This document shows, one piece after another, positions 1,126-50,998 of a DNA stretch of 64,000 bases. The notes under the pieces are model-generated. The model saw nothing but the letters and a program-made list of their open reading frames with translations, was not told the DNA's origin and did no database searches. This DNA comes from Kudoa neothunni (Eukaryota; Animalia; Cnidaria). The stretch lies in the NCBI GenBank assembly GCA_964304625.1, contig OZ199838.1, positions 8,205,550 through 8,269,549 of the forward strand. Direction: 5' to 3'. Numbering within the stretch: the first letter of the stretch is position 1; the number at the start of each line of letters is the position of its first letter. Position numbers and translations under genes: made by a program.

Positions 1126-4100
1126 TTATTTTCTCCAGTACTAAAAAAATTTAAAAATGAAATGGAGTTATTTGTTACTTGAGCCCATTTATGAATTTGC
1201 TCTACAACGGTTGCAAAAACTGCTTTGACACTTTCATCTATGAGCCCCATCAAATAAATCGCAGCTTGTTCATCGTCAAGGTCGAGGCGGAATTTTTCTT
1301 CGATCTATTTTTAAATAAGACGGTCATAAAAGTTTGGGGCATGTATAGAACAACAACTTTTTGAATTGCTTTATCCGGCTCGAGAGCAATGTCAACAATA
1401 TCCGCATCCAGCATCAAGGCAAATAAGTTGAGAATGCTATTAGCATTTCTATAAATTGTATAAAGTATTTAATCGATAACAGAAAACAACCAACCTTCTT
1501 AACAAAATAAATACAGTGAAACAAAGGTTTTTAAATTGTTGGAAATGCTCACTGATTTCTCCACCCATTGCTTCAATCTAACAAACACCTCAGTCAACAA
1601 AAATAAATATCGAATGCTTATGGTTACCATTTCACGAGAGAGTTTCATAGGAGGAGGGAACGGCTTAGGATCTCTTCCAAGTATATACCCAAAATCAATG
1701 TGAAACAGTGTTCCTAATGAGTTTAAATTATTTATTAAATGTAAATATAATTTTCATTGCCGAATAAGGTAATGGCAAAGATTATGAGAGCTAAAAATTA
1801 GTCAATCAAAGACTAACCTGTCCTTGTCAGCAACAGATTATCCAAATGGCGATCTCCAATACCAAGAATATACGTGATCACACTGTAACCGGCTACATAA
1901 AACATATATTTATATATATTGTTCTAAAAAAAGCTACCGCAACTTTTGATGTAGTTGTCCATTACATCTGTTCGAATTCCATAAACATCTCTATTTGATG
2001 GCGCAACTTTTCTGAAAAAATTCTAGATGATACATACAATAAGATTTCGAGCAATAAAACAACCACAATTACTTGAATAGAGTTATCTCTAGACAAAATC
2101 TCTCCAATAGATTCAGATTCGACGAACTCGACAATTCCTATAGAAAATTAGACGTATTAAAACAGGAACAGTCGCACATTTTTATTAAAAAGTAATAATG
2201 TCGAAAGTCGATACAAATTCTATTAGATTCCCTATCAAAATCTTTAGCCTATTCCATGTATTTAATGGAGATACTTATTAACCAACTTTACAAATCTAGC
2301 ATGATTTTACAACATAAAAATCAATAAAAAATTCTTTCCTCCAAAACCTTCACTTTTTTAATGTCTCTTATATAGATTTTGAAACATTCATTCACTTTGA
2401 ATGATGACATAATTTAACATTTAAGCATTAACTATAGGGGGTGTTCCTTTTCGATCATAATTTATTCAAAACCAGCACGAACTACCCAGCTTCGCACAGG
2501 ATTGAGAATATTTTATCCTAGAACATGTATATAAAATAATGAAATATATCAATTCTTTCAATTAATTCCTGGAAGTTAAATTAACCTTGTTTTTTAAATT
2601 CATATTTTTAACGACTGTGATAAGTGCAATTAAAGTTAATAACATCTTAGGGAGATCATAAAAATAGCAAAAACTGTATAACTCGATGATAACTTGAGAC
2701 GACTAATTTTTATTGCGCAAATTAATATCTCTTTATCCGGGACATTTTCATACACTCTTTTCTCAAAACAACTGCGTAACCCCCTAACCCTCTAATGTAC
2801 TTAAAATCGACTTACCTCAGATGGATTTTGGGGTAAAAAATACAAAAGTTTTTTTCATTCCATATACAAGAAAAAATATAATTTTTTGAAATTATACAAA
2901 ATAGAATAATTATAGTGTCAGAACCAGTTGAAAATAAATAAATAATCCCTATAATCCTACGATAACTAGCTTTGTTGAACATCGCTGTTCTAATTTAAAG
3001 ATAATGGATAATTTTTTATTGTGCCTCATAGCTAGCAAAAATCTTTTTAGAAAAAATGAAAATATAATTTATTGTTAAATCAATTTATAAGCATTATAAA
3101 ATGAGAAGAACTAACGATAACAGTAATTGCAAACGTTTAATACATGATTTTTGTAACAATATCTACTACATTTGAAACAAACATTGTTTGTTTTTTTATC
3201 TAATTTCCTGGGCCAAAATTCGCACATTGACAATTTATTTCGGGAATTCGGTGTATTGGGTTGTTTTGCAGTGCAGGACGAAGGCCTTTTAATAACACTG
3301 TTATTTGCTACATTTCTTTCCATAAGTGGATCAAATAACAATTTAGCCAGTATTTTCAAAAATTTTCTTCAAATAACATTTCCATCAAATATTTTGTTGT
3401 ATACAGATATTGCATTTACCAGTGATAAATCGACTATATTAAAAAATACCATCATACGCCACCATCTGTAATGTCGTCTAACAGAAACGGATGACAACAA
3501 ATGGTCCACAGTATCAACACCGCCTTTTGTTGAATTATAATGAATAATAACTTCTGGTGTACATTTAAAATCATCATTAATATTATCATTCGTTGATCCT
3601 GAAGACAATAATATTACCGCTTTGTTTTTTTTCTTACATATCACGTTATCATGTTTCTCATGGAACAAAAATTGACTGCTATAAACATATTTAATTTTGG
3701 ATGGCAAAGCACAAGATGGAGTTTCTGTCATGTTATGTCGAATAGCATCCAACAGAGTCATATTTTTTTCGAGGGACTTAATCGATAGATTGTATGACGT
3801 AAAGAAATTATCCATTACAACATTTCTACCAGAGAAATAAAGCTGCTCACAAAGCTTCATAACGATATTTTCTCCAGCGTTTGTAAATTTTTCGGGTTCA
3901 GGTCCATTTTTACCAAGATACACATCAATGCTGTACACATAGCATCCAATGGGATCCACGGCTAAAAAAATTTAATTCCGTATTTAACAGGCTTTAACGG
4001 TATGTACTGCCGGAATGGGCATCTTCCCTTAAATGGTACAAAAGCATTTTGGTAAAATGTCTGTCCTCCATTTTCTTTCTTCTCGAATATTATAGTCGTC

Positions 4101-7100
4101 AAAATGAATCGCTATAGATATCTGACGAACTCGTTGGTAACTGAACAGTTTCCTATAAACACACTTGCCCTCGGAGGTACTAAAAAGTTCGCCAACAGGT
4201 TCACCGCGGTCTTTATGAATGGCCATAAGAATTAAAATCCCAAAAAACCTTTAAATTCAATTTCATCAACGTCATGTCATTTGTCAAATTTCGATGCACC
4301 AAACTGATTGGTATATTCTATTATCGTCGAAATGATTTCTTCCGTAAAAAATATAAAAAAAACAATCGAGTTTCGTTTTGAATCTTGACGTGCCATAGGT
4401 AGTAAAACCAGGTGCCGGCTGCATAATATTACATTTTGATGCTTTGGAAGTTGGTGGTTTTTGATAACTCCATATAATTCCTTTTTAACTCACTGTAAAT
4501 TGATCAAACGGTTCACACTCCAAAATATCTGATTCTTCTACAGATTCTGTGAAATTATTATCATATTCAATATTAGAAGTATCCGTAATATCATTGCAGC
4601 TGCTACCCAAATAATCCATTTTTGAAGGGGAGACGTGCACGAGTGTAATGAACTTAATGACGTGATGCGGTAAGAATTAAGAACGTTATATTTTAAAATT
4701 TACCCTTCAGTAAATTCTCGTCTTAATAAAAATAGTCCAGAACATTTTTATTTTTGCTTCTGAGAGAGAAAAAATTGGGGTATTTTTTACACCAAAATCC
4801 ATAGGAAGATGGAAATTCTATAACTCCGCTATTTTACTATATATTTCCAAAAAATTTTTTTAGACCATTCATCATGATATTTTGGAGGAATAGATGGAAT
4901 TATAAAATTTAGAAATATGGAGAAACTAGAGTAACAATATCCTATTGAGGTATTATTTTACCCCAAACCCATTAGAGGGTTAATATAAATTAAAATATTT
5001 CAAATAATTTGATAACGTATAATTTAAATCTATACACAAATCTTATCGCTTAAAATTAGGTTTAACGGACGGTTTAACGAAACTTGAGGACCTAGTTTCA
5101 GTATTTAAGGCTTGAATCTATCTGATTATAACATGCGCAATCGATTCTTCATTAATTTAAAAAATTTTCATATATTTGTAATACTAAAGACATCTATAGA
5201 ACTTTGATAGTGTTTTTATAATGGCAAATTTATTGAAAGTCCCAGCATAAGGAATGTGTCCAAGTACACATCCAAATAGACACACCTACTTTATATATAC
5301 AGATAGGTACGATATATAAGACGTATCTCGAAATCATGGATATAGAATTTAACTTTGAACCACTAAAAACATTCACAATGGCTTACAGAAGTTGAGTGCA
5401 GATAAATGTCGCCATGAAAAATAATATAATCCTATTATTGAAAACACGTAATCCGTTTAACAAATCTAACACCGAGAACAACACAATTCCCTACATTATT
5501 TTTGAATTCCTTCAATGTAATAACAAATAAAAGCATTTTTAAATTATCTTAAACTATTAAAAGTTGCACAAATATCTATCTATATGGAAAATTTTTGCCG
5601 CACGTGTGAACTTAGGGGCACACACGGACACTTCAGCTTTATAAATATAGTATCCATGCTGGCGCGCGGTCGTATTTTGTATTTAAAAATTACATTTTCT
5701 TTCTTATATTAATAATAACTCGTAGGTATTCAGCTGTTTTACCATTCTTTTACAAACCGTGTCTTATTTTACAGACGAAAAAGTCCAATTGTTTTATTTT
5801 CTAACACAGGTGTAGGTCATGAGCAAAAATATTTTCTCTTAATTTATTTAAATGCTTAATGACTTCATTAATGGAACAAATGATTCCAGTTTTTTTCATA
5901 ATTTTCATCAGTAAACGATTCACTCATTGCGTCGACTTCATTATTTATTGAGTTAACATATTTATCTTTTGGACCTTTAAATGGAGTAATTTCTTCTATA
6001 TTAACCTGACCTTCAGTTTGATTTATCTAGGGATTTACTTCCAATCGAAAGCATAATGCCTCCTGATCCACAATTATTAACAAGAATGATTTATTTTAAA
6101 TAGTTTTTGATTGTTTCTTCATTCATTAATTTCCACCCTTCTTTCATCGTGTATATATCTTCAAGTAAATATGGATGATCATTATTTAAATTTTTATCAA
6201 AAATACTAATGGAATTAACAATAAATTTATTTATCAAATAATTCATCAGACGATTTTTGTAAATGTATTAAAAACCGTTAATAATTCCTTGATCTGATTG
6301 TTGCAATACGCTAGTCGTTTCCTGTGGGATAAGCTGGGAAATTTTTACCAAATCATATGAGGTAATGGTGTACTTACCGGCTACCAAAATTCGGCATGAT
6401 GTCGTGATTTTGTTCGGCCGATTTTTTCGTAGATTAAGTTCATTAACTCTAAAAAGTTTCAGCTTATAAAAAGAAATCAATTTTTTTTGTTTCTAATGTC
6501 TCCTAAATTCGTTGTCATAATCCATTAACTGAGCATAACATAACACGTGACGCCAAATAAAAATACCCTCAAACTATATTTTCTCACATTTTATCACTTA
6601 AACTTAAGGATGCACGTTTTCAGAAAATTAGGCGGCAATGGTTGATATTAAATCAGACGATGAGTTTTTTTTGCTTATAAATAATAATGAGATTCTGTTT
6701 AACTTCTTGGTTTCGAAAAAAATCGTCCATCGCCTTCCAAAACAATGTAGAAACTGTAGAGGTTGCGACACAATGTACACCTCTACAAGAGAGAGAACGG
6801 AAACTAGTTAATTAATTTCTTCATTAAATAATGATGAAAACATAGTTATATACGTATGTAGAAAGTAACTGAAATACAATAAATGGTTTTCATAAAATAA
6901 GACCGATGTAAAACAAAACTATGTCCAAACAAAAAAACCTTTTTTACCGGAAATGAGGGAACAAAACAAAAATTATCTACCAAGAATATATTAAATATCT
7001 TGTATAATTGGTCTTTAGATAATACTATTGAATCAATCTCATCAATGGTTTCTGTCTCCAAAAAATCGATTATAAATTGGTTTATTAAAATTCGAACCAT

Positions 7101-10100
7101 TTGTACAAACCATTTCCTCAATCGACAAAAATTCGGCAGTGAAGGATACGTTATTGAAATTGATGAAAGTCTATTACATAGCAAAAGGAAAAATAACTGG
7201 GCCGTTAATTGAAAGGAGATTCTTGGAAACATTCTTCTACAAAAGAAATTTTTATCCCTGAGAATGAAATGACAATAATAAGAAAAAAATTTAATTAATT
7301 TATTATGTCTTCTAGACGGATGGAAGTGGAAGTGAGTATTGCCCCGATTGCGGAGAATTATCCGACGAATATATATATATATATATGTGTATATGTTATT
7401 TAACTATATGATAGTAAATTTTATTAATTAGCTCTATGTTCGAATTCTGAAAAATATGGGAATAGGGTGAGTGGACGGTCCCTGGGTTTTTGGTCTTTGC
7501 TTCTGCTCAGTTAATCCAGATGGAAAAAGGACTCTAAAAGAGGTAAGGTATTTCAGTGTTCAACGAAGAAATCATGAAACTCTGATACCAATCATTGAGA
7601 ACCAGGTCCTTAAAGGGTCAACTATTTACAGTGACGAACGGCCTGCTTACAATAAATTATCAGAACGAGGTTACAATCACATTCGAATCAACCATTCCCC
7701 AAGTTATTGTATTAATGGAGCACATTCGAATACTATCGAATCTTGTTGGGGTCAGCTCAAACTTAAGATTCTTAAAATTAAGAGAGGTGTGAGTCGATTA
7801 AATTTCGATAGTTACCTACATGAAGAATGGTTCCGACCTATTATGGGTGGGAAACTCAATTTATTTAACAACTATTTGAATGTTATTAATAAATATTACC
7901 CAACTGAATAAACCGTCTGATTTTTTGCGCAATAAAAGCATAATAAATGTCTAAAGTTGATTGGAATAATTTTCTCAATCTAGCATCATTAATATATAGG
8001 GATATTAATGATTTTATACGTGACATGTAAAATCAACTTTACCAAATAAGACTTTTATAAAAGAATAAACAACATTCAAATCATAAAACTTTAAAAATAT
8101 TGTAATAGAATATGTAATTCTAAGCTTTATATAAACCGATTTAGTTACGCCTAAGGTATATTTTTGAACGTTTTGTGAAAAAGATATATTATTGTTAAAA
8201 TGATTTTTAACTTTATGCATAAACAAGAAACATTTTGAGTAGATAGAAAAAGAAATTGCCACAAGATTTAAAAATTATTAGTTAAATAAAATAACACGTT
8301 TAGCTCATTTCGTAAAATGTAAAATATTATCTACTTTTTGGTAGAAAATTGTCTAAAAAAAAAATTTAAACTAAAAAAACCAAAATTCATTTGCAACATT
8401 ACTTATAAACTTAGATTTTTCCATTTTAAATCTGTGCATTGTGAAAATTTCCAAAATAGAATGATTCAATTTTTAATTGATTAAATCGGCAAATAAGTAG
8501 ATTCCACATATTTTAAAAATCATTTTTCAAAAATTAAATAGGATAACTTTACAAAATCATTAATTTAAATTGGTTAAAACAGGAAAACAATACCTAAAGT
8601 AGTACCATAAAGGAGATTAATACAGCATACAAAGGATTATGACAACGAATTTAGGAAACATTAGAAACAAAAAAAATTGATTTATTTTCATATGCTGCAA
8701 CTTTTTAGAGTGAATGAACTTAATCTACAAAAAAATCGGCAGAACAAAATCACGACATCATGTCGAATTTTGGTAGCCGGTCATTACAGACGAGTAAAAT
8801 GCTTCCATAAATGGTTCATAGTGTAATATTTCGAATGAAATTGCATTTGATATGAATTAACTCCATTATAACTTTTGATAATTCGGTTATTTACGTCATT
8901 CCAATGTTCCTGAAGATAATAAATGCTATCGAAATATATACGAAGATAAGGATGATGTTAATTGGTTTTCTGAGGAATTTCGAATAACTAAAAGCTCCAA
9001 AAAAATATTTTTCAAAACCTCAAGATTCACGTTGCTACGCTTCAAACAGAATCATTTCCTCAACTTATACATTCCTCATATTTTATGGCAAGTCTTTTTC
9101 TCAATTGTTATTTCAAATACTAACGAGTCTGACAATTATAACTATCGGCATTATTTAAAGACTTGGCAAACCAACAGCCATTGTCTTTATGTTAATTTGA
9201 AGATCTAAATTATAATCACTCAAATTTCTTTGTCGCGAGTGATGCTGTTATTGTTCAAGATCTCGAGACAGAAATGCGAAGAATTTTTTTTGTAGAATCG
9301 GTTGGAATAAAAGAAATTTTAAAGTTTTTTTGCGTGGTATATTGAAATATTAAAACCCATTAAATTAAAAAATAAAGTTAAACTCGTTAAATTAGATGCC
9401 TAATTTAGCCTTTTCAATGATTTGGTAATGATCGTTAACAACCGGCGGTGTCATAATTGTGACATTTTTCAGTATTTTATCGCTAGTTTTCTCAAATACT
9501 TTAGCAAATTACGTATTACAATTTTCCCCATAATTCAAGTTTAAAAAATGTGAGGTCCGTTGGACCTCAAAAGAAGGAATGTGTAAAGTCAGTTTTCAGG
9601 AGTTTGGAAAGTTAAGAAACGTATTTGTGCGAAATCTTCTCCAAGCAACGCTGGGCAGTTCCCGCTAGTATATATAAAGGAGGACTGTCGATATGTTTGT
9701 GTGTGCCCAGGGCTTGGATTTTTTATAATCACCTTGGGTTTTTATTGAAAGCCTATAAACATTAACCCTCTAAAGCAGGGGTCGGCAGGCCAGAATATAT
9801 TTAAATCCAGTAAATTTATATTTTGACATTTAAAAGAATATATTTTTATTTTAACGAGAAAAAGAAACATAACGAAAGTGAATGTTCGATATTTTTATTT
9901 CATAATTTACCTGATATTTTTGGAGTTGAATTTAAATGTTTATATGTTCAAATTATGGTTCTAAATCGTAAAGAGCAATAATTAAACGTTTCCATTAGCT
10001 ACAATAAAACTAATAGCGTACAATCAGTAAAAATGGGTAAGAAATTTGCTTGGGGAAAAATTTTAATCTTTATTTTTTTAAGCATTTTATGTTTAAAAAA

Positions 10101-13100
10101 GGGAATAATATTTAAGTAACATAGTTCACATTGCTATTAAGCTTATTTATATGCTGAAGAGATCGACATTAAAAGTTGGGGAAATTATACAAGCACCGTC
10201 AAAAAAATTAATGTTATCAACGACATCCCTTGCGGGCCGGTCGTTGCCGACCTCTGCTCTAAAGGTGTTGGGGTATATTCTACCCCAAAACGATTTTTAC
10301 ATAGCAATATCTCATTGTTTTCTATATGAAATCTCTTGAAATTTTGGGTATTCTTAAAAAAAATAATTTTAGTAAATTTTAAGTTAAAAATTTTTCAATT
10401 GATTAAAAAAGTTTCTATAAAAAAATTCTTCTGAAGTTTTTGGGGTAAAAAATACCCCAACAATTTTTTTGCTAAAATTGAGGGAAAAATTTTTGTATAT
10501 ATAAATAATCACATTTAAGTGATATTGTATGAGTAGTTATGGAGATAATCCAAGTATATTGCGCGTTTGTTCAAAAGGTGCATGCTCAAACCTTCACAAG
10601 CACCAGCATGAGCGATAGCGTTGACTTTAGTGACGATATTTCTTCATCCGGAAGTGAATTTTAAGATTATGTTATGGATGGATATGAATTAACGGATGAT
10701 GAGATTGAAGTTAACGATGTTCATCCTGATTCCTTACGTAGCAAAAGTGGTATTTCATGGAGCATTTTGAAGCCTACAATAACCAAAACATGTGCGGAAA
10801 ATATAATGGATTCTACCCCTGGATCTACTTGTTACACATCTCTAAAAATAAAAAATTTGTTTGACCGTTTTACAATTTTCCTTACCGCGGAAATTTGTAA
10901 TAAAATTATACACTTCACGAATATTTTTAGAGAACATAAATTCAAAGATAACTGGTGTGAAGTGGATGATATCAAATTTCAGGGTTATTTAGGTCTTCTC
11001 ATACTAATGGGAACTCACAAAGATAGACAAGAACTCATATGCGAGCTTTTTAGTATTAAAGAAGGGAAAGAAATATACCGGCAGTTGTTTTCTCTTCGAC
11101 GATTCAAGCAGATTTCGCGTGCCCTTCATTTTGATGACTTCAATACCAGAATGCAGCGCAGGGATGTCGATAAATTTTGTCCCATACATGATTTATGGGA
11201 TCACTGGGTTAAGATATTGTCTAAATGTTTCGATCCACATCAAGATGTAACTATCGACGAGCAACTTGTTTCATTTCGAGGTCGATGCCCATTTCGTCAA
11301 TATATGCGTATGAAACCAGCAAAATACGGTATCAAATTCTTTTTGTTGGTCGATCCAGTTTCAAATTATGTTTTCAACGTTTCCATGTATCTTGGCAAAA
11401 GTAATTTTGAAGCTTTGCGACAGTGTAACGTTGGAGAAAGTGTTGTTCTTTCATTGTCATCTCCATTGTTCTATTCCGGCAGAAATATCGTAGCTGATAA
11501 TTTCTTTTCATCATATTGACCTTCTTGGGAATTTTACGAAAAAACAAAAAAGAAATTCCAAATTATCTGTTTCCCTCAAAAAAATGAGATTTATAGTAGC
11601 AAATTTGTGTTTAACGAAAAGTTCATGTTGGTATCATATGTATGTCAGAAAGCCAAATGTGTTATCTTGTTGGCTACTGGTACATCAGACTACTATTTCA
11701 GATGAGGCATTAGAGTTCAAGCCCAAAATAATACTGGACTACAATAAATCTAAAGGTGGTGTGGACAATGTCGATAGGATGTTGGCTTCTGCTTCTGTTC
11801 GCCGATTCACCAGAAGATGGCCTTTAGTAGTGTTCTTCAACATGATGGATTTATCTTTAGTCAACGCCTTTGCAATATATAAAGATGTATTTAACGATGC
11901 GAGAAAGATTAGACGCTCTTTCTTAAAAGAAATTGCAGAGAAGCTTTATAGTCTATTGCTGATGCGAAATTCATCAGAAAAGATCATTAAGAGGAAATTA
12001 CCAATTCTTCCATTTATTAACAAAGTTCCACCTATTGATGTAAAGCTCTCAAGATGTGAATATTGTGAGCGAAAAAAGAACAAGAAAACTACAAAATGGT
12101 GCAAAACTTGCTATAAATTTTATTGTCCTATGCATGCCTCGAATACTGGTTAGAAATGTTATGAATAAAAATATACTTTAAATTTATATTATTTTGGTTC
12201 ATTATAAAGGGTGAAACTTTTTTAATCCTGGCGATAAAACACAAACTTATGTTAAAAAATACGATCGAATGTTGACGATGGGTGTCGTACAAATACGATG
12301 TGGATTAGCTTAGGATTAAATTAGAATGTTAATGTTTATTTCACGGGGATAAATTAAATAAAATAACTAGGGTATTTTTTGCCCCAAAGACTTACACGTA
12401 CGTTGTTTTTTCGATCCTTAGAGGGTTAAGCAATGATAAAATTAGAATCCACAGATTTATTAATTTTTACTAAATTTAAAGACACAACGATAAAAATTTT
12501 AATTGGTAAAACCAAAACAAAAATTAAGCTAAAATTAAAAATGTAAGAGATCTCTTGGAACTTCGATTTAAGATCGCTGCCTTATTGTATGGTATTTTTA
12601 AACCCCCTTTTCACAACAAAGTATTTCGAATAAAATAGTATGAAGGATAAAGTAATTTACCTTGTTCGGCACCAGTGGCAATCACCCTGTATGGTGTTAA
12701 CTTAAGATCTAGATTTTCTTTCAGTAGCATCTAAATTTGTTGTTAAAACTATTCACGTACCAATCGATAAATAGTATACATTGTTTATGAATGAAATAAC
12801 TCGAAGAACAAGTTGGTCCTGTCGAATATCATCGCCATTTTTAAAAATGACGGAGTATTCACTTTGGCGGTTGGTCAAAAAAGTCAATTTCAATGGCATA
12901 AGTTTGGAATTAAAAACAAATGATTTATCTAAACCGAGAATGATTTTTAATATGAATTAAGCTCAAACTGTTTGATTAAAGTACTGGGGATAAATCCGCA
13001 TATTTGAGTTCCGGGGAGCAAAGGTAAATATAGTGGATCTTTAAATGTATATTCACTTGAGAGTAGAGTTTGTTGTAACGCGGACATCTAAACAGGAATA

Positions 13101-33645: not shown

Positions 33646-36600
33646 CAGTAGGTAACCGATTTTCGGTAACTTCAGACTTTCTTCCCTTAACCCTCTAACT
33701 ATCCAAAAAACATATACCTCTAACACTTTTGGGGTGTAAAACACCCCACTTTTTTATTGCATAATAATACTTAGATAAATCGAATGATCATAATTTTAAG
33801 ATAATGCCGAAATTGCCGGTAGCGAACAGGAAAATACGCCTTAGCTTCAAGCATTCAATCTCTTCGTAACAAATCGTTTGATATTACGAGTCAAGTTAAT
33901 GTTTATAAATAGGTTTTTTGCCCAAAATAATTAACTAGAAACACGTATTAATGAGAATACAACCAAAAAAGAAAAAAATATTTTACCAATTGCACTTAAA
34001 ACAAATGTTTGAGGAGTGATCTAAACAATAATATTTGTAGCATCTCTGGCACCATTTATTTGTTTTTTATCTTTACTTCGTTCACAGTACTCACAACTAG
34101 ATTATTTGGAGCTCATAGGAGGATTCTTTTTCGGACGAATTTCTTGCCAATAAGGGATTGTAAAGTTCTTCGGACATCTGTTTCAAAAAATTACGCCTAG
34201 TTGTGGTACTATCATTAAAAACATCCTTAAATATTGCAAATGCATTAATTAGAGATAAATCCACCATGTTAAAAAACATTAGAGACCAGCTTCTTGTGAA
34301 TCTGGGTACAGAAACCGACGCTAGCATCCTATCGAAGTTATCGACATCCCCTTTTGTTTCGTTATAGTTTAGAATCACTTGGGGCTTACACTTAGTTGAC
34401 TCGTCGCTAACAGAATCATCAGTAGTACCGCTCATCAACAGAATTACTGCTTTCGACTTATTACAAACATAGGAAGTCAGCATGAATTTTTCGTAATACA
34501 CAAAAGTACTACTGTAGAGGGTTCTTTTTTTGAGGGAAGAAAACAAGGAGGTATCTCTTTTTTGTTTTTCCGAACTGTTCCCAGGAAGTTAAGCTTTTTC
34601 TGCAATAAATTTTTCGCAAGGGAGAGTGATGAAAAAAAATTGTCCGCTACAACACTCCTACCTGAATGGAAAAGTGGCGTAGACAGTGAGAGAACAACAC
34701 TTTCACCCAATCCGAATTGTCGAATGGTTTCATAGTTATTTTCCACTGGATCAACTAAGAGAAAAAACTTTAGGCCATATTTTGCCGGCTTCATCGGCAT
34801 GTATTGTCGGAATGGGCACCTTCCCTTGAACGAAACAAGTTGCTCGTCTACGGTTACTTCTTGATTTGGTGGAAAACATCAGGGTAATAAATCAACCCAT
34901 TGATTCCATACATCACGGACTGGGCAAATTTTTTTTTTCGTTCCAATCGTGTATTAAAATCATCGAAATGGAGTGCTCGAGTGATTTGAGTGAATCGAAG
35001 GAGTGAAAAAAGCTTTCTGTATATTTCCTTACCTTATTTTACACCGAAGAGCTCGCATAAAGGCTCTTGTCGGTCTTTATGAGTAGTCATTAATACGAGA
35101 AGACCAAGGTAACCTTTAAATTCCACAAGGTCTAATTCAATCCAATCTTCTTTAGAATGGTGCATTCCAAACACGTTGGTAAATGAAATAATCTGATGGC
35201 ATATATCATTGTTGAAAAACAGAAGGAAGCAATCTAGTAAGCATGGTATCTTTGACGTCGCATAAGCTGTAACTCCAGGTAAGGAATTTATAATGTTTTC
35301 TTGGCATGTTTTAGTTGTAGGTGGCTTGGACAAGCCCTACGTAATTCCGCATTTGCTTGTTAACATGTTGCTATGTTCTTCCGGAATTTCAGCTTCATCA
35401 TCAGTAATTTCATCCTCTTCTATAATTTGATCCTCTAATTCGCTTCCAGATGAACATAGATCGTCACCATACTCAATAAGACCGCTCATTTCCACACTGT
35501 CAAATATACAAGGCGTGCGCATTTATTATATCGGATAACGATTGCGCAGGCGAACTCATGTAACTGCCTTACGAATCTCATGATTTTGGAATAACTATGG
35601 ATTTCATGCCATTAATATTACGTATCCGTAACAAATATATTTATTCCTATTATTTAAGCAAAAAAATCTGGGGTGTTTTTCACCCCAAAAGTGTTAGAGG
35701 GTTAAAATATTATTTTATTTTGTTCGTCGGTTGTAATAATAGTTTACATCATTTTAAATATTGAAAATTAGAAAGTGGGGGTTTCCTATTATTAGCGCTT
35801 AACCGATTTTCCGTAACTTTTCAGTTATAGGCGGATTTAGTGGTGTGCCTTTTTTTACATTTATAATATCTGGAAAGTTTAAAAATGGGGAAATAATAAA
35901 ACTAAAATATAAATTTATTTATTTTTTTAGTACATTAAACAGGAGTGCAAAAATACTACTTTTCGTAAATTTAAACTCTCTTCTATTTCTACTCTAGATA
36001 TCATCTAGAGTAGGAAGGAAGATATAGTTTTATCTTATAAACTGGCTTGGCTTCTTCAGACAGAAAAAAATTTAAACAGTGTTCAAATCACGACATCGAT
36101 ATTTTAGTACATGATTGGGTGAATTATTCGAGACAAAAAAATTGAACTATCTGCTCATGATATCATACATGAAAGAGACCAATTGTCAAAAGAATTGAAC
36201 CTAAGCGTAGTAATGACCCTTGATTGATTTCTTGGTCTTAAATCCCGATGGAATTTAAAAATATTACTGCCCATGGTGATGCTGCTTATGTTTACTACAG
36301 TTTTGTAGAAAATTGGTAATCTGAATTGAATGACTAAGTCAAAAGTAACAACGATGACTGTATCTATAACCTTGACGAAACCGCACTATTTCACTAACAA
36401 CATGGTGTCCATTATTTTTAAAGCTATATTTTGTCGAGAGAAAAAAATCTACAAAATAGTTACTGTTTTGCGGCATGCATCTGTGCCTGGAGGTTGCATT
36501 GAATCTCTTGCGATTGAAAATCACAAAAATCGGGTTGTCTTAAAATGCTAAAACATTTCTAGTAAAATACAAATCGAACAGGGAAGAATAGATGACTAGG

Positions 36601-43655: not shown

Positions 43656-45303
43656 ATGGGGCAGTCATTAGAAAAACCGGCCGTCGACAAACATTTCGAT
43701 AATGGAGTTGGTAATAACTTACAATTTGCTGCTTGTGGAATGCAAGGATGGCGTATCAATATGGAAGATGCTCATACAGCTATTACATCGATAGGTGATG
43801 GATTTGAAAATGTAAGCTTTTACGCAGTGTTTGATGGCCATGCTGGAGCATACACAAGTAAAGTTGCCTCTCAAGAACTTTGTCACCATTTCAGGGAGTT
43901 GCTTCGGTCCCGCAACATAGATAAAGTGCCTGAAACGATACAATCAGAAGAGATGGAAAAGTTTAAAGAGGCATTAATCGACTCATTTGTAACATTTGAC
44001 GATCAACTCAAAGATTCTGAGCCGTATAAGTCTCTACGTGAAGCATGTGGTAGCACGGCTTTGGTGGCGTTGGTGACATCAAATTATGTGATATTTTGCA
44101 ACTGTGGTGATTCAAGAGGATTTCTATCGAGATCCAATAAAGTTGAATTCCAAACACAAGACCACAAACCATCAGATCCTGCTGAAAAATCTCGAATCGA
44201 AAAATCTGGTGGTTGTGTTATAATGGATCGTGTCAATGGTAATCTAGCTGTGTCACGAGCTTTGGGAGATTTTTCCTTCAAAGACAAGACAGAGCTCGGT
44301 ACCAAAGACCAAGCTGTATCTCCGGAACCAACTGTTACAGTTCTTGAGAGATCGTTCGAATCGGACCAGTTTATGGTACTTGCATGTGATGGCATTTGGG
44401 ATGTGATGTCGTGTGATGAAGTCCGTAAATTTGTTCACACAAAACTTCTCTTAACTGATGATCTCAAATCGATTTGTGGTGATCTGATTGACACATGTTT
44501 TATGAAGGTGCTAAGTTAGATTGTTTGAGTTGTTTGTGAAGTGCTGTTTTTCTATAGGATAGTAGAGATAATATGACTGTGCTTATAGTCATTTTTCCTG
44601 GTGCTCCTAAGGTTGATCCTGTTCAGCAGGAACATGTAATAGATTATCGATTCGTTGTGTTGTATTCGATTGTTTTATTGTTTTAACGTCTTAGGACAAA
44701 CAATATGAAAGGAATATCAAAGAACATGTGCAAGGTACCTAATTATTATAACTCTGGGAACCGTTTTATTTTAATTGATCGACGCAAGCGCACCATAAAT
44801 TTTTGCCGGAATTAACGACAAATTATTAACATAATGTGTTTTAGAAATAATGGAGACGCAAGGGCATAATGTTCCTCTCATTACCGTATTGAATCAACTT
44901 GTTGAATGCGATCTTTCGCCATCACCTGATTGTGCATCCGCTCAGCTTGATATCTACTCTAAGTACGATCTTTCATTGATCAATAAATTAATTTTCTTCT
45001 ATTAAAGAATTGTTTAATTTTTTCATGTTTTTGATTATCTTCCAATTTAGGAAAGGTTTTGTTGAAAATCTAATGAATAGTATCGATCCCAGCCGGGAAA
45101 CCGACCGAGACTATTCAACAATTTCAAATCTTCCAAACGCTCCTATCGCTCTACAGGCAATACAACAACTTGTTAGATCTGAACATGTAGAAAATTTTAC
45201 TGGAGCTTCAATCTTCGATTCGGCTACACCTGAATCTAGTCCCAACAAATTGGATACATCGAATGACGTTGAGTCTGATTCGAGCTCCACAAATGATCAC
45301 TAG
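43656..45303 (+). CDS. PPM1A/B: Protein phosphatase 2C, PPM1A/PPM1B-type, multi-exon
   Basis: MGQSLEKP N-terminus, MQGWRINMEDAH, FYAVFDGHAG, NCGDSRG, DHKP, RVNGNLAVSRALGDF, LACDGIWDVMS, SRDNMT..FPGAPKV plus a C-terminal extension. Confidence 0.94.
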
Positions 45304-45535
45304 AACTACCAAGCAAACAACTATTTTAATTATTAATTTCATATAAATATGTATTACTATGTATTCATATGCATATCATCACCACAACTACCACAGCGTT
45401 GAAATTCTATCATATTGGTCATATAGGAATAGACGGACCACAAATAAGTTGTTTTTGTCGTTTATTGTAGTTATGAATCTATTTTTTGTTTTTTTAAATG
45501 TTGCATGCGTGCGCGCGTAGCTTAAAACATTCGCC

Positions 45536-47438
45536 ATGCTGAGGTTGTTAATTGCAGTTGGTAGGTCAGGTATACCGAATAGTTTCAAAGATAGAATAGG
45601 AGGATATGATTGTATCAGAACTAAGAAAAAGGGTAGAATGGCCAAAAAGTTGGCTAAGTTAGCTAGAGAGAAGCCAACCCACGTTAGTCCATTCTCTGGA
45701 CTGGGGAAAGTATCGGCGTCTACTCGCGAGGCGGTCGAAAGAAATCTAGAATTGGCTTCACTTTCGAAAACCAACGTCACTAATCTCGAAGTTATACAGG
45801 CTCGACTTGATCGACGAGCTGCAAGAGCTGCTAGAAAGGCGGAAAAAAGACGCAAAGGAAGAGTTAAATTAGATCCGGAGGCTATTCGTGCTGAAAGAGA
45901 ACGTAAACGTGCTCTAGAAGTAGAACCAATCACCGCCTACCCTGAGAACAAAGATGTGCAGGAGTTGATTGTACGGAGATTCTTACGATTACAGAATGTT
46001 GACATGGAAACTATATTCAAAAATCCGTCCAAGTCGGTGTTCGATTTCCATAATATCAGGCAACCTTACTTTTTAAGTCTCCCTCATGAATCCCAAATAA
46101 ATGATATTGATAAACAATTAAAGTAGCTCGAATCACTGTTGGATCGATCATTTATCGTGTAATTTTGATATTTAGACAATTAACGATGTTAGTAAACCAA
46201 TGCTGTAATCAATCAACACCAAAAAAATCGTTGATTGACGAGTTGGCCTTTCTTGATGCATACAAAGGGGCCGTTGAGAATAACAATTGGTGGGTATCAC
46301 TTGGATGCCCAATCAAATTGCAATACGAATGTCACAATGATTGGATATTGGGAATATATTTGAAATATGGAATTGTCAAAGATCCATTTAGAAATAAGAA
46401 GGGTTACGAGGAACAAATAGTGAACGACTACAATCAGAAACTTATTGAGCAGGCTATGTAGTTAGCAGTCTGTGTGTGTTGAAACTATTACAGTTGATGA
46501 GTTTAGATCTTCTGGTATTGTAGATATTCGTGATATGATTACATATGATATTATGGATCAAATTAAGACACTCTCAAAACAAGATGCATCAAATGATGAT
46601 TATGTGTGGACTATTAATGGTGATCATTTTGTACAAGTTCATAAACAATTGTTCGATGGAAATCCAGGCCATTGCAGAGCTTCACTTGAGGGTATTACAC
46701 TTTAATCGAATTTAAACTACATTTATGTTAAAACATTGATTAGATCCACCTGAAAAACTTCATCCAAACGTTGAATTTATCTTGAGGTCATCTAGAACTG
46801 TATGGGATGGTCAAAAATGGGTTCTTCCAACAATGTCTCAACCAGCGGTGGATTGCTATAGAAAAAATTATGTTAAAAACGGTTACGAGTGGCCAGACAC
46901 CACAAACCGTTGTTTACTCCCCCTAAAAGAAGAGTTGCATTACTGCAATTTCAATTTTAGAGTGTGGAGAAAAATCATCGCCCATGATCCTGTTCGTCTT
47001 GAAAATTATCGTAAATATATGAAAAATGTAATAGAACGTGCTATTGTTCCTCGAAGAAAAATGTCTACACTATTCAAACGAGTTTTCATGAGAGTCGCAG
47101 GAAGTTTTGCTGCTAGTGTTGCCAACAAATCTATGAATGATGCATTCTATTTCTATAAAAATTCCCCGAAAGTAAAGCTCTGCTACGTTTAAAATAACTA
47201 ACAATAATGCTGATGTTCGGTCTTTTAGATAAAGAGGCTGGTGATTAATGGACTTCGAAAAGAATGCAAAAAATATCCCGATGTATTCAAACTATACATT
47301 ATGAGAAAAGTAAGATCTAACCACTACTCAAAAACACCCAAAGACCTTAAAAAGTCCAAAAAACAAATCCGGGAACGCGATCATCCTCTCGATGATTTTT
47401 TTGTCAAAACAATCAATTCTAGTGAATCTTCTTTATAA
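45536..47438 (+). CDS. Unrecognised five-exon protein (~560 aa), basic, presequence-like N-terminus
   Basis: ORFs 45536, 46165, 46472, 46782 and 47241 join in frame through four ~50-57 nt GT-AG introns with no internal stops. GCCATG start context. Confidence 0.8.
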
Positions 47439-47885
47439 AATTAATTTTATTACCGTTATTAACTGTTATGGTATTTTAAATTTTACTTTTTCAGTATTTG
47501 ACATTTATATAGTATGCGTGTTGGCTCAAATCAACTGGAAATCGTTTTAAATTTTAGTTGAAGGGATTTTTTAAAAATGTAAATATTCAAACTTATGTCA
47601 TCAGAAATAAAAATGCAACGCAACTAAATTACAATTAGGCTATGTGATTTTCTTCATTCATTATGCACATTGATTATACAAATATATTTTTGGATGTTTT
47701 TTCTACTTTATGAATTATCCAGTGTACTGAAGAATTGGTGACTTAGGACTCATGCCATATAAGGTTTTATGAGGGTTAGTAATGTGTGAAGTGACACTTT
47801 TTCTCCGGATATAACGTGTCAAACCATATAATGTTTTAGGAATAAATTTATTACAATTGTTTGTTTAAATTTACTTAAAAAAACT

Positions 47886-47943
47886 CTGGGGTGAATTTCA
47901 CCCCAAAATCATGGGTGCTAGTTCGTTTTTTGATACCTTAGAG
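47886..47943 (+). mobile_element. piggyBac 3'-end remnant whose TIR is interrupted by hAT insertions
   Basis: TGGGGTGAATTTCACCCCAAAA + spacer + TTTTTTGATACCTTAGAG has the same layout as the 3' end at 12370-12425 (TTTTTTCGATCCTTAGAGGG|TTAA). Confidence 0.75.
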
Positions 47944-49558
47944 CAGTGTTCCCAACCTTTTTTCTATCGCGCCCAACTTTTTCTTGAAAATAAGTTCTGC
48001 GCCCCACCTTTCTCAAATGTAGGGGTTAAGATCGGTTCGGTTTTTGACAAAACCGAAACCGATGTTGAAAATGTATTTTTTAATTAATATGAATTAGCTT
48101 TTATTATTAATTAATACAGTCTTAAATAAGTAAACTCGTTTTTAAAATAGTAAAATGACATAAAATGTTGTTGAATGACGTGTTTTAACAAGGAACAAAT
48201 TTTGTATTTAGTATTACAGGAATTGTATCTGGTATTTGTAGCTATTTCGTTAGGCTTTCTAATAAAAGAGAAAAATGTAATAAATGTGACCTCGTACTCA
48301 CCAATACAATTGAGGATTTCTCACGTGTCGACGGAACCATTTCAGAAATTTTAAAAAGGAAATTTTTCAAACGTTGCTTTGCACTACGCATCATTTGGTC
48401 CGATATATTTGTTTTTAAGATTCGATTCAAACAGTTATATAAAAAATATTTTCTACAGAAGAATGTAAATTTGGAGCCAGAAGACACACTTAATTTCATC
48501 GAATTGAACGATCAAATCAAAAACTATGAATCTTCTGAATCCGAGATAAATTGAGACAATTTGATAAATTACATGCCAAGACCAAACATTTTAAAATATA
48601 GCTCGCATTTAGTGAAATTACAAATTTTATTAATCACAGTGTGATGCTAGATCATTTAGAAGGGGTTCGTAAAACTCTTTCTAATGCTAGACCTACGAGT
48701 ATTGACTCAGATCGATGTTTTACCTTATACAACCGTCCTATTTCCCAATTGAGAACAAAATTGAGCGACTCAAAACTTGAAACCATTGTGTTTATCTATG
48801 AAAATAGAAATAATTAAATTGAAATTTGAGACATGAAATCTTTTATTAGTGTTTAACACCATTTTATCGTAAAAGATTTCTAATCATTTTTACATATTTT
48901 TTGCATGGAAAAAATTGACATTGATAATTGGAAAAATTATTTACAAAACCGAAACCGAACCGTCGTAACCCCTACTTAAATGTATTGATTTTTTAACTTA
49001 AACTGCTTATAAGTTTGAATCAAGCTTCATGCCACATTAAAATTATAAAATGACAAACATATATTTCTTTTTCATTAGAATTAAAATGTATTCGATTAGA
49101 TCTAATTCAATTTGTAGATTGACTTTAAAAATTAACATTTATACTTCTTCATTCAGTCAAAAACCGCATTAAGTGAAACTTGTGATAATCCAATCCACAG
49201 CAGGCATAACTTTTCTGTATTCGGGCTTATAAATTGAAATTAAATAATTAATATTGACAATTAATCAATATTGTTTTTGAATAAGCCAAAAAAAGTGAAT
49301 CACCGTTATAAATGATAAATGTGACAACATTGGAATTATAACCATTCCGATTCTATTGAGCAAAAACCATGTTAAACGTTTTTATATTTTTTATATAAAT
49401 TAATCAATGCTTTGGTATTGTTTTTAATATTCATATTCGCTTAAAAATAAAAAATATCAAAAATCGAAGTATTTATTTCAATGTGCGCCATACTGCCCAA
49501 TTATCTCACCATTATCCATGCCCCACCGGTGAAGCGTCGCCCGCGTTGGGAAACACTG
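47944..49558. mobile_element. Non-autonomous hAT (Buster/Charlie-type) element containing a nested hAT
   Basis: TIR CAGTGTTCCCAAC...GTTGGGAAACACTG; perfect 8-bp TSD CCTTAGAG (47936-47943, 49559-49566). Confidence 0.9.
48020..48974 (+). mobile_element. Internally deleted hAT (TAGGG-type) with dimerisation-domain remnant
   Basis: TIR TAGGGGTTAAGATCGGTTCGGTTT...AAACCGAACCGTCGTAACCCCTA; TSD CTCAAATG/CTTAAATG. 48644-48817 encodes RPTSIDSDRCFT....SQLRTKLSDSKLETIVFIYEN*. Confidence 0.88.
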
Positions 49559-49566
49559 CCTTAGAG

Positions 49567-50155
49567 CAGGGGTTTTCAACCGGGGGTAAATTGAGTAACA
49601 TCAAAATTAGATAGGGGAAATATTTGCATAATGCGGTTTGTGACTTACTTAAGGACGTCTAAGGAATTATATTATTTAGAGCTATTAAACGCAATTAGAA
49701 ATGGTCAGAAATTCTCAAAATGTTTTTAGGAATAATTATTTAACAACAATTTATAAAGCTACTACCAGTTGCTTTCTTTTATATCTCGTTTATCTTTCAG
49801 GAATGTAGCCAAATAATAATACTTAAAATAGCTACTTTCATAGTAAATAATCTTCAGGAGCCACGTATGGTGACTATTTTTAATTATTGCTGATCTCTAA
49901 GGGCGAAGAACTAGGTCAAAAATAATTTAATGTAATCAAATCTAAAAAATAAAATATGTAGACAACTTGTGAATAAGGACCGCTGGGATTAAAAATTGTC
50001 AATACACAGGCGGGTATGCCTTTTTAGATTAGAATTTATCATGCAAATAGCCTCTGCCTTAGTTAAAACAGTACGTAACCTTAAACCAAATATGGATTTG
50101 GCTTCCAAGTTAAGGGGTAAATTTCGATTTTTCACAAGGCCGAGGGAGTAAACGC
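49567..50155. mobile_element. hAT (Buster-type) element, right end lost
   Basis: Begins CAGGGGTTTTCAACCGGGGGTAAA directly after the CCTTAGAG TSD. GGGGTAAA-type subterminal motifs recur at ~50113-50152. No right TIR seen. Confidence 0.65.
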
Positions 50156-50998
50156 CCAGAATTGCGTTGTGTAGTAATCGTCCAATTGTCTTATCCTATC
50201 CGTAGTAAAATTTATCGAAAATATTAGTTCAAAAAACCCATTAACTTCAGACATTCATAGTGGAAATCTGTTGGTTACGAGTTGACGAAATTCTACGTTA
50301 TATTTTATTCGTTCATTCATTGTATGTGTATGCATATATAAGGATTTAATAATTTTAATATCGCAACTTCTAATTTGGTTTTCGTAACAGGCAATGTAGC
50401 AGTTAAGCAGTATTAACATGCTTGATTTCTACAATATTAATTTTGAATTTAATAAATAATAAAGAATTATTGTTTGCTTCATCGATCAGTAGTTAAACTA
50501 TTTTTAATATTTACGTAATTAATACCTTAAATGAAACATAAAGAGAGAGAAGAAAATTTATTCTTACTAACGTTTCTAAAAAATCAAGGATGATTGTTAT
50601 TTATCTGACGATAATTATTTAAATCCTGATTAAATTTGCCTAATTATTATTGTTGTTTTATTTACTATATTTTAAATATATTTTAATACATTTAGATAAG
50701 CTTCATCCTTGTAAATATTTATTTCTGTTAATATCTAAAATTTTAACTAATAGGATCACAATATATTATAAAGAAAATAAGTAAAACATTTGAAAATTTT
50801 AGCAATAATATTTAAATTAAAAATAAATCTTTATATCTATGTAATTTTTTATGGCAAGGCATTTACAAAATACAGAAAAATTAAAATATCATTGAACGGC
50901 TGTGCTTTAATACGAAAAATGACAAAAGAAACGGTGAAAAAGTATGGAGACCATTTAGATGAAAATAAGTTTCTATATTCATTAAAAGGAATGACTTA

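Follow-up and report, generated by a model that had tools for sequence, protein, structure and literature searches.

The window analysed here is a 64,000-nucleotide (nt) stretch of the Kudoa neothunni genome (contig OZ199838.1, positions 8,205,550 to 8,269,549), and it contains two places where transposons of the hAT superfamily lie inside the end of a piggyBac transposon. Site 1 opens on the plus strand with the TTAA target duplication on the 5' side of the host piggyBac (9762–9765), read directly from the sequence. The two following bases, CC (9766–9767), are nt 1–2 of the piggyBac terminal repeat and lie outside the hAT insertion. The first copy of an 8-base-pair (bp) hAT target duplication, CTCTAAAG (9768–9775), coincides with nt 3–10 of the terminal repeat. 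It is followed by a non-coding, AT-rich hAT miniature inverted-repeat transposable element (MITE) of 481 bp (9776–10256), a member of family A, with arms beginning CAGGGGTCGGCA and, on the other strand, CAGAGGTCGGCA. The second, perfect copy of CTCTAAAG occupies 10257–10264. The remaining host piggyBac runs from nt 11 of the 5' terminal repeat, starting GTGTTGGGG, to the 3' terminal repeat (10265–12425), and is closed by TTAA at 12426–12429. A broken transposase lies at 10674–12153 on the plus strand as two open reading frame (ORF) fragments of 281 and 189 amino acids (aa), which match PF13843 (DDE_Tnp_1_7) with E = 5e-45 and 1.7e-8. The matching inverted end, TTAACCCTCTAA, was found on the minus strand at 12418–12429, so that TTAA followed by CCC stands at 9762 and, inverted, at 12429. 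With two terminal ends and PF13843 fragments between them, the host is a piggyBac copy of ~2.2 kb (9766–12425) whose transposase gene is broken.

The insert has the hallmarks of a hAT MITE, and site 1 is a true nested insertion. The initial annotation had placed the MITE at nt 3–10 of a piggyBac terminal repeat, and both the layout and the perfect duplication, read directly, bear this out. Removal of the MITE and one octamer leaves a rebuilt end of 25 nt. Uninterrupted versions of this end exist at three other loci (one mismatch) and, when up to three mismatches are allowed, at 25 loci, while a reversed-pattern control returned none; the claim that this removal restores an intact piggyBac 5' end is thus upheld. 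The rebuilt end had also been equated with the ends at 4979 and 35701, which proved to be incorrect. Those ends belong to other piggyBac families (59% mean column identity) and have only CCCTCTAA and a later GGGG block in common with it. The left junction of the MITE was spanned without mismatch by a contig assembled from a public run of short reads. The public short-read contigs, which constitute the read evidence there, showed no empty-site joint at site 1; a raw-read run labelled as the same species did not contain the organism.

Site 2 begins with the subterminal part of a piggyBac 3' end (47860–47935, plus strand), the family end reading CCCTCTAAGG and then TATCAAAAAAC. Next come the target duplication CCTTAGAG (47936–47943; CTCTAAGG on the piggyBac strand), a hAT of 1,615 bp with arms beginning CAGTGTTCCCAACC and CAGTGTTTCCCAAC (47944–49558), and a second copy of CCTTAGAG (49559–49566). 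The second copy is common to two stacked hATs, the other being a MITE of family B that starts CAGGGGTTTTCAACC (49567–50155). The far end of this MITE (~50155–50180) is decayed, and the outer GGTTAA tip of the piggyBac was not found. The left flank of the 1,615-bp hAT aligns with the 3' subterminal region of a piggyBac family found at many loci. Comparison of 44000–47943 with the site 1 piggyBac by blastn and tblastx gave no match, and the ORFs in this interval had no Pfam match; only its terminal ~80 bp are piggyBac-like. Two further hAT hits had been proposed here, at 47936 and 49559. The 1,615-bp hAT with its perfect duplication stands, while the second hit, with its far end decayed and the outer tip missing, is supported by a single junction. 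The initial annotation was right in counting seven CCCTCTAA-type ends in the window and two of these as hit. A hAT-like element of 955 bp (48020–48974, plus strand; arms beginning TAGGGGTTA, duplication CTCAAATG/CTTAAATG) is nested in the 1,615-bp hAT, outside the piggyBac ends, which makes the locus three hATs deep.

Two piggyBac copies in the window are unhit, one at 2784–4983 (minus strand, as is its transposase; ends reading CCCTCTAATG) and one of a third family at 33687–35705 (minus strand; ends reading CCCTCTAAC). Together with the site 1 host (9762–12429), three ~2-kb piggyBac copies of three families lie within 33 kb, all with transposase-like sequence and two on the minus strand. Just upstream of the site 1 piggyBac, at 9606–9707, the summed contig depth of public runs rises to ~2,350, compared with 15–120 nearby, and marks a very high-copy short repeat.

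The class of the inserted elements is indicated by several features. Their 8-bp duplications are perfect at 9768–9775/10257–10264 and at 47936–47943/49559–49566, and such duplications flank most copies of families A and B as well. The arms begin CAGGGGTCGGCA, CAGTGTTCCCAACC or CAGGGGTTCTCAACC, in keeping with the short terminal inverted repeats of hATs, which start with CAG or TAG. One hAT situated in a piggyBac end octamer (locus L093) carries remnants of a hAT transposase, with the hAT dimerisation domain PF05699 at 29.4 bits against a cut-off of 21.4. The assembly holds at least 149 matches to this domain, and three long hAT ORFs of 531–594 aa were flagged in it; a DUF4371 match stayed below threshold (21.3 bits, cut-off 32.1). 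The duplications follow the Buster/Charlie-type consensus nnnTAnnn and not nTnnnnAn: T4 and A5 were invariant in 27 duplications outside piggyBac ends, with T2 and A7 at 65–88%. TcBuster and its relatives likewise have an 8-bp duplication with the published Buster-type consensus nnnTAnnn, ends that begin CAG, and the hAT dimerisation domain, which the elements studied here show in their coding relatives. The inserted elements therefore appear to be Buster/Charlie-like, an assignment drawn from the duplication consensus and the end motif.

The recurrence of the site 1 arrangement was examined in the whole assembly (40.26 Mb in four contigs) by exact-pattern searches, which miss decayed junctions. 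The end motif TTAACCCTCTAARG (TTAACC followed by CTCTAARG) was found at 94 places, compared with one in the control. Thirteen of these ends continue directly with CAG, the start of a hAT terminus, and all 13 have different genomic flanks. For most of them the other hAT end was located, with a repeat of the octamer behind it and piggyBac subterminal sequence further on. The octamer itself occurs 1,628 times. Followed by CAGNG it occurs 30 times (10 in the control), and 15 of the 30 are in exact piggyBac ends. When every match without an exact TTAACC context is treated as a genuine insertion outside the ends, 13/94 octamers are occupied in ends and 15/1,519 elsewhere (odds ratio 16, p = 7e-10, Fisher test). 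On reading the flanks of the 15 non-exact matches, we assigned seven to decayed piggyBac ends, one to chance and about seven to true hAT insertions elsewhere. The decayed ends read TTAACT, TTAACA, GTAACC or TTATC, and one has piggyBac sequence on its inner side. The refined table then gives ~22/103 in ends and ~7/1,503 elsewhere, with an odds ratio of ~58 (Fisher test). A search for the inner junction (CNCTG followed by the octamer) added eight end-located events whose outer junction no longer matches. The piggyBac end context thus raises the use of the same octamer 16- to 58-fold. Equal occupancy inside and outside the terminal repeats, which the initial annotation had named as the alternative to its proposed hotspot, was not observed (13/94 versus at most 15/1,519). 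The excess supports a hotspot beyond plain preference for the duplicated octamer, and an 8-bp target preference as the sole cause is rejected.

A wider pattern, TTAACC followed by NNNTANNN (any TA-centred octamer) and CAGNG, was found 47 times, compared with four in the control. The octamers of these matches end in CG, TG, GT, TA, CA, TT, AC and CT as well. Most of the 47 prove to be hATs: the octamer is repeated at their far end, and piggyBac subterminal sequence comes next. Individual reading left two false matches, a few ambiguous ones and two pairs of duplicated loci, the remainder being hATs. Ends reading TTAACCCTCTAA (TTAA plus CCC) number 547 in the assembly (nine in the control), and under the strict criterion 27 of them carry a hAT at nt 3–10. 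The hit rate was 14% for octamers ending in RG (13/94) and 3% for the others (14/453; p = 1e-4), which means that the octamer's own sequence modulates the effect. The neighbouring TA-centred octamer NNTTAACC, which spans the TTAA, served as a local control and holds one hAT insertion, compared with the 27 at nt 3–10. This sole exception to the register (L120, G000:C3:10162455-10165515) has the duplication CTTTAACC/TTTTAACC. The piggyBac end is a hotspot and not a strictly specific target: ends account for about 20% of the family B copies sampled and for none of the other 27 in family A.

Several candidate loci were discarded. L094 and L119 are not hAT hits; their piggyBac family, to which L104 and L148 also belong, has an end that continues (C/T)(A/C)GCGAAAA beyond the octamer, and where it reads CAGCG it mimics a hAT junction in pattern searches, a trap for automated counting. 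L107 and L130 are apparent chance matches, and L131 and L146 represent another repeat.

The hits are recurrent and independent insertions at one register of the piggyBac ends (TTAA, CC, then CTCTAAnn). At least eight hAT end-types occupy end octamers, in both orientations and in several piggyBac end variants. Nearly all hits stand beside different genomic flanks; only L063/L069 and L093/L115 look duplicated. Members of family B are ~600 bp long with ends beginning CAGGGGTTCTCAACC, and a first look yielded 381 candidates. Among the 40 best-scoring copies, 9 to 11 (about a fifth) lie in a piggyBac end octamer, corresponding to ~8 independent events once the query and one duplicated locus are dropped. 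A single sampled copy was found in a piggyBac body, compared with ~9 in the two end octamers. The remaining duplications of this family are TA-centred, T2 and A7 are weak in them, and their flanks share no motif. In a maximum-likelihood tree of family B, the end-located copies are scattered, requiring at least 6–7 changes compared with 8.8 for shuffled labels, and their terminal branches resemble those of the remaining copies. Since flanks, families, orientations, octamers and tree positions all vary, descent of the hits from one duplicated ancestral insertion is excluded. The multiplication of composites is at most a minor contributor.

Family A behaves differently. It has at least 40 copies in the assembly, and its duplications fit nTnTAnAn. 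The absence of its other delimited copies from piggyBac ends shows that the bias differs between hAT families, most of it coming from families other than A. Seven family A copies (L005, L006, L007, L011, L012, L013 and L016, on C1, C2 and C3 of G000) have both flanks in common and no matching duplication; one flank ends CCCAACAC, followed by a 6-nt insert and then CTTTAGA, and is piggyBac-end-like. They look like a MITE that was trapped in a larger repeat and later multiplied. A further family A MITE (L025, G000:C1:15859200-15860350) stands one base outside a sequence ending GAGGGTTAA, adjoining an apparent piggyBac end without lying in it. At L048/L063 (G000:C2:4136024-4137179) the host is a piggyBac MITE so small that the hAT is only ~40 bp away from the other GGTTAA end; the locus resembles a hAT with piggyBac caps and has a near-identical duplicate, L069.

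Several other features and processes were also considered. An extended flank preference was rejected, as the insertions of families A and B outside piggyBac ends have no C-rich or TTAACC-like flank. A binding motif shared by both partners, namely the family B motif GGGGTAAATT ~15 nt from each end and the piggyBac GAGGGTTAA or GGGGTA blocks, was dropped because hAT families without GGGGTAAATT hit the same register. Gene conversion spreading one insertion among piggyBacs was rejected on reasoning, as the outer side offers only 14 bp of homology. The orientation of family B relative to the piggyBac tip (13 versus 7) was not significantly biased (p = 0.26).

The octamer fits the general hAT taste nTnTAnAn, but this taste alone leaves the bias unexplained. 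We propose that the hAT transposition complex, in selecting its target, reads features of sequence or DNA shape in the piggyBac tip outside the duplicated 8 bp. The piggyBac end would then be a standing, chromosomal, high-affinity target for hATs. On balance we favor the explanation in which site 1, a true nested insertion, exemplifies a hAT hotspot present in piggyBac ends throughout the genome, with the tip read by the hAT complex. The narrower proposition, that the complex reads more than 8 bp at a resting tip, seems to us to fall just on the favorable side of an even balance.

Because the hAT enters between nt 10 and 11 of the piggyBac end, 136 bp to several kb of DNA come to lie between the tip and the inner part that binds transposase. 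The moth piggyBac needs contiguous bp 1–16 and 17–33, with minimal ends of 35 and 63 bp; by analogy, a hAT insertion would be expected to disable and immobilise its host. The site 1 host is already broken in its transposase gene, whatever the effect of the insertion. Because the duplication rebuilds the octamer on both sides of the hAT, a hit does not consume the site; renewed insertion then yields tandem, stacked hATs with one octamer between them. Such stacks were found at site 2 of the window and at loci L047 and L134. In evolutionary terms, a piggyBac end may offer the hAT a harmless landing site, a safe harbour, in a gene-dense genome. It is possible, if rather doubtful, that a hAT transposase clade evolved to seek piggyBac tips, either directly or through ends distorted by the piggyBac transposase.

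These proposals have to be weighed against other explanations of the same counts. Were the 8-bp preference the whole cause, piggyBac ends would merely hold many copies of the octamer. Such a view accommodates the fit of CTCTAAAG to the nTnTAnAn consensus of the insertions outside ends, the higher hit rate of CTCTAARG ends than of other endings and the lack of any other end-located copy in the family of the window MITE. We give it next to no credence, as the same octamer is occupied at 1% or less outside ends versus 14–21% inside, and many hit ends hold octamers that break the consensus at position 7 (AAGG, AACG, AATG). It is very improbable that a few ancestral hAT-in-end composites were multiplied by segmental duplication or by the piggyBac transposase. 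Movement of a composite might be allowed, as the outer 10 nt of the end survive the duplication unchanged and the outer tip rebuilt at site 1 has only two differences from the intact 13-nt tip; the common outer flanks within L063/L069 and within L093/L115 do indicate duplicated events, and the seven family A copies with both flanks in common lie inside a larger repeat. Yet the outer flanks are unrelated in almost all hits, and the hits comprise at least eight hAT end-types in both orientations, with several variants of the octamer and of the inner flank. On the family B tree the hit copies require at least 6–7 changes (8.8 for shuffled labels), and we saw no two loci that match in hAT, orientation and host while differing in their TTAA flanks. 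A retention bias is improbable too. Under it, hATs insert evenly, and copies in repeat ends survive as harmless, or the hit piggyBacs cannot excise and accumulate. All data are indeed survivors, and the genome may be gene-dense: a published 40-Mb myxozoan has ~15,000 genes, and the genome studied here would appear gene-dense if it is alike. Retention cannot explain the exact register, nor the single family B copy in a piggyBac body versus ~9 in the two end octamers, nor the single insertion in the neighbouring TA octamer versus 27 at nt 3–10. It would also have to place about one-fifth of family B copies in ~550–700 sites among millions of TA positions.

In the main rival, which we regard as unlikely, hATs target not the resting piggyBac end but an end on which the element's own transposase is acting, and which is bent, nicked or hairpinned. 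The distorted tip would attract the hAT complex, and the first TA in duplex DNA beside the tip would fix the register at nt 3–10. In the moth piggyBac, a TTAA hairpin forms at the ends as an intermediate, and the transposase grips the first 16 bp and kinks the DNA. Hairpin tips and distorted DNA are also the strongly preferred targets of RAG, a mechanistically related transposase. The tip itself is the only constant feature among hit ends of different families, and the octamer spanning the TTAA is hit only very rarely. A target that persists in the chromosome, and not a short-lived intermediate, is suggested, though not decisively, by the stacked second insertions and by hits in piggyBac remnants that are tiny or decayed. 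A bound transposase might equally shield the site, and nothing indicates piggyBac activity at the time of insertion.

Recognition of the resting tip by the hAT complex, which we prefer, also has points against it. None of the 27 other delimited family A copies is in a piggyBac end, and the window MITE could therefore be an ordinary hit on a well-fitting octamer. The 40 family B copies were ranked by likeness to a query that is itself in a piggyBac end, and the denominators for decayed piggyBac ends are estimates. In families A and B, no flank motif common to the targets inside and outside ends was found that would explain direct recognition. All counts refer to surviving insertions and none to de novo events; selection in a gene-dense genome may inflate the ratio, though hardly 16-fold.

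Eukaryotic cut-and-paste transposons are usually thought to pick their targets by a few bases and the state of the chromatin. Strict or strong targeting is rare and has long been known mainly in retrotransposons. The closest documented parallel to the present hotspot is bacterial, and the likeness is functional only. IS4321 and IS5075 insert into the terminal repeats of the Tn21 family and also hit look-alike sequences, with Partridge and Hall (2003) cited for the latter. As in the present case, the preferred target is a fixed position in the terminal repeat of an unrelated transposon family. These insertion sequences differ in belonging to an unrelated enzyme class and in being near-strict, and the wider IS110 group chooses its targets by RNA guidance. 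Elements of the IS4321/IS5075 type have an IS110/IS1111-type recombinase and make no target duplication, whereas the elements described here are eukaryotic hATs with 8-bp duplications and a broad TA-centred range, with about one-fifth of one family in piggyBac ends. Dada, which inserts into small RNA genes, and Pokey, a piggyBac in 28S rDNA, are likewise DNA transposons that land in multicopy, harmless sequence. Their targets are host RNA genes, and Dada is strict, whereas a strong hotspot over a broad range is seen here. The stacked hATs recall the tandem double insertions of Drosophila (hobo, P element and R1), in which head-to-tail elements are separated by exactly one copy of the target duplication; these have been attributed to repeated use of a preferred site, regenerated by the duplication. 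Those elements are of the same family, while different hAT families stack here, within a piggyBac end.

We found no report of a hAT hotspot in piggyBac ends in full-text literature on hAT/piggyBac nesting, myxozoan transposons, target-specific DNA transposons and nested-insertion preference, a weak piece of evidence as subscription journals lay mostly outside the search. In the literature searched there was also no report of Buster/Charlie elements preferring the ends of another transposon. As far as this search reaches, the finding has no eukaryotic precedent and belongs among the target-preferring transposons.

At least eight hAT end-types converge on a hotspot that is defined by the terminal repeat of another transposon. 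This provides a natural system for studying hAT target choice beyond the 8-bp duplication, including that of the Buster relatives used as gene-transfer tools, and the claim is directly testable by a target-plasmid assay. For repeat annotation the sites carry a warning: chimeric consensus sequences, hATs with piggyBac caps, will arise from them. They are also a concrete example, within a compact genome, of transposon superfamilies in conflict or commensalism. If a hAT transposase clade did evolve to seek piggyBac tips, this would amount to transposon-on-transposon parasitism in a eukaryote, in which hATs gain harmless landing sites and a competing transposon is disabled as a by-product.

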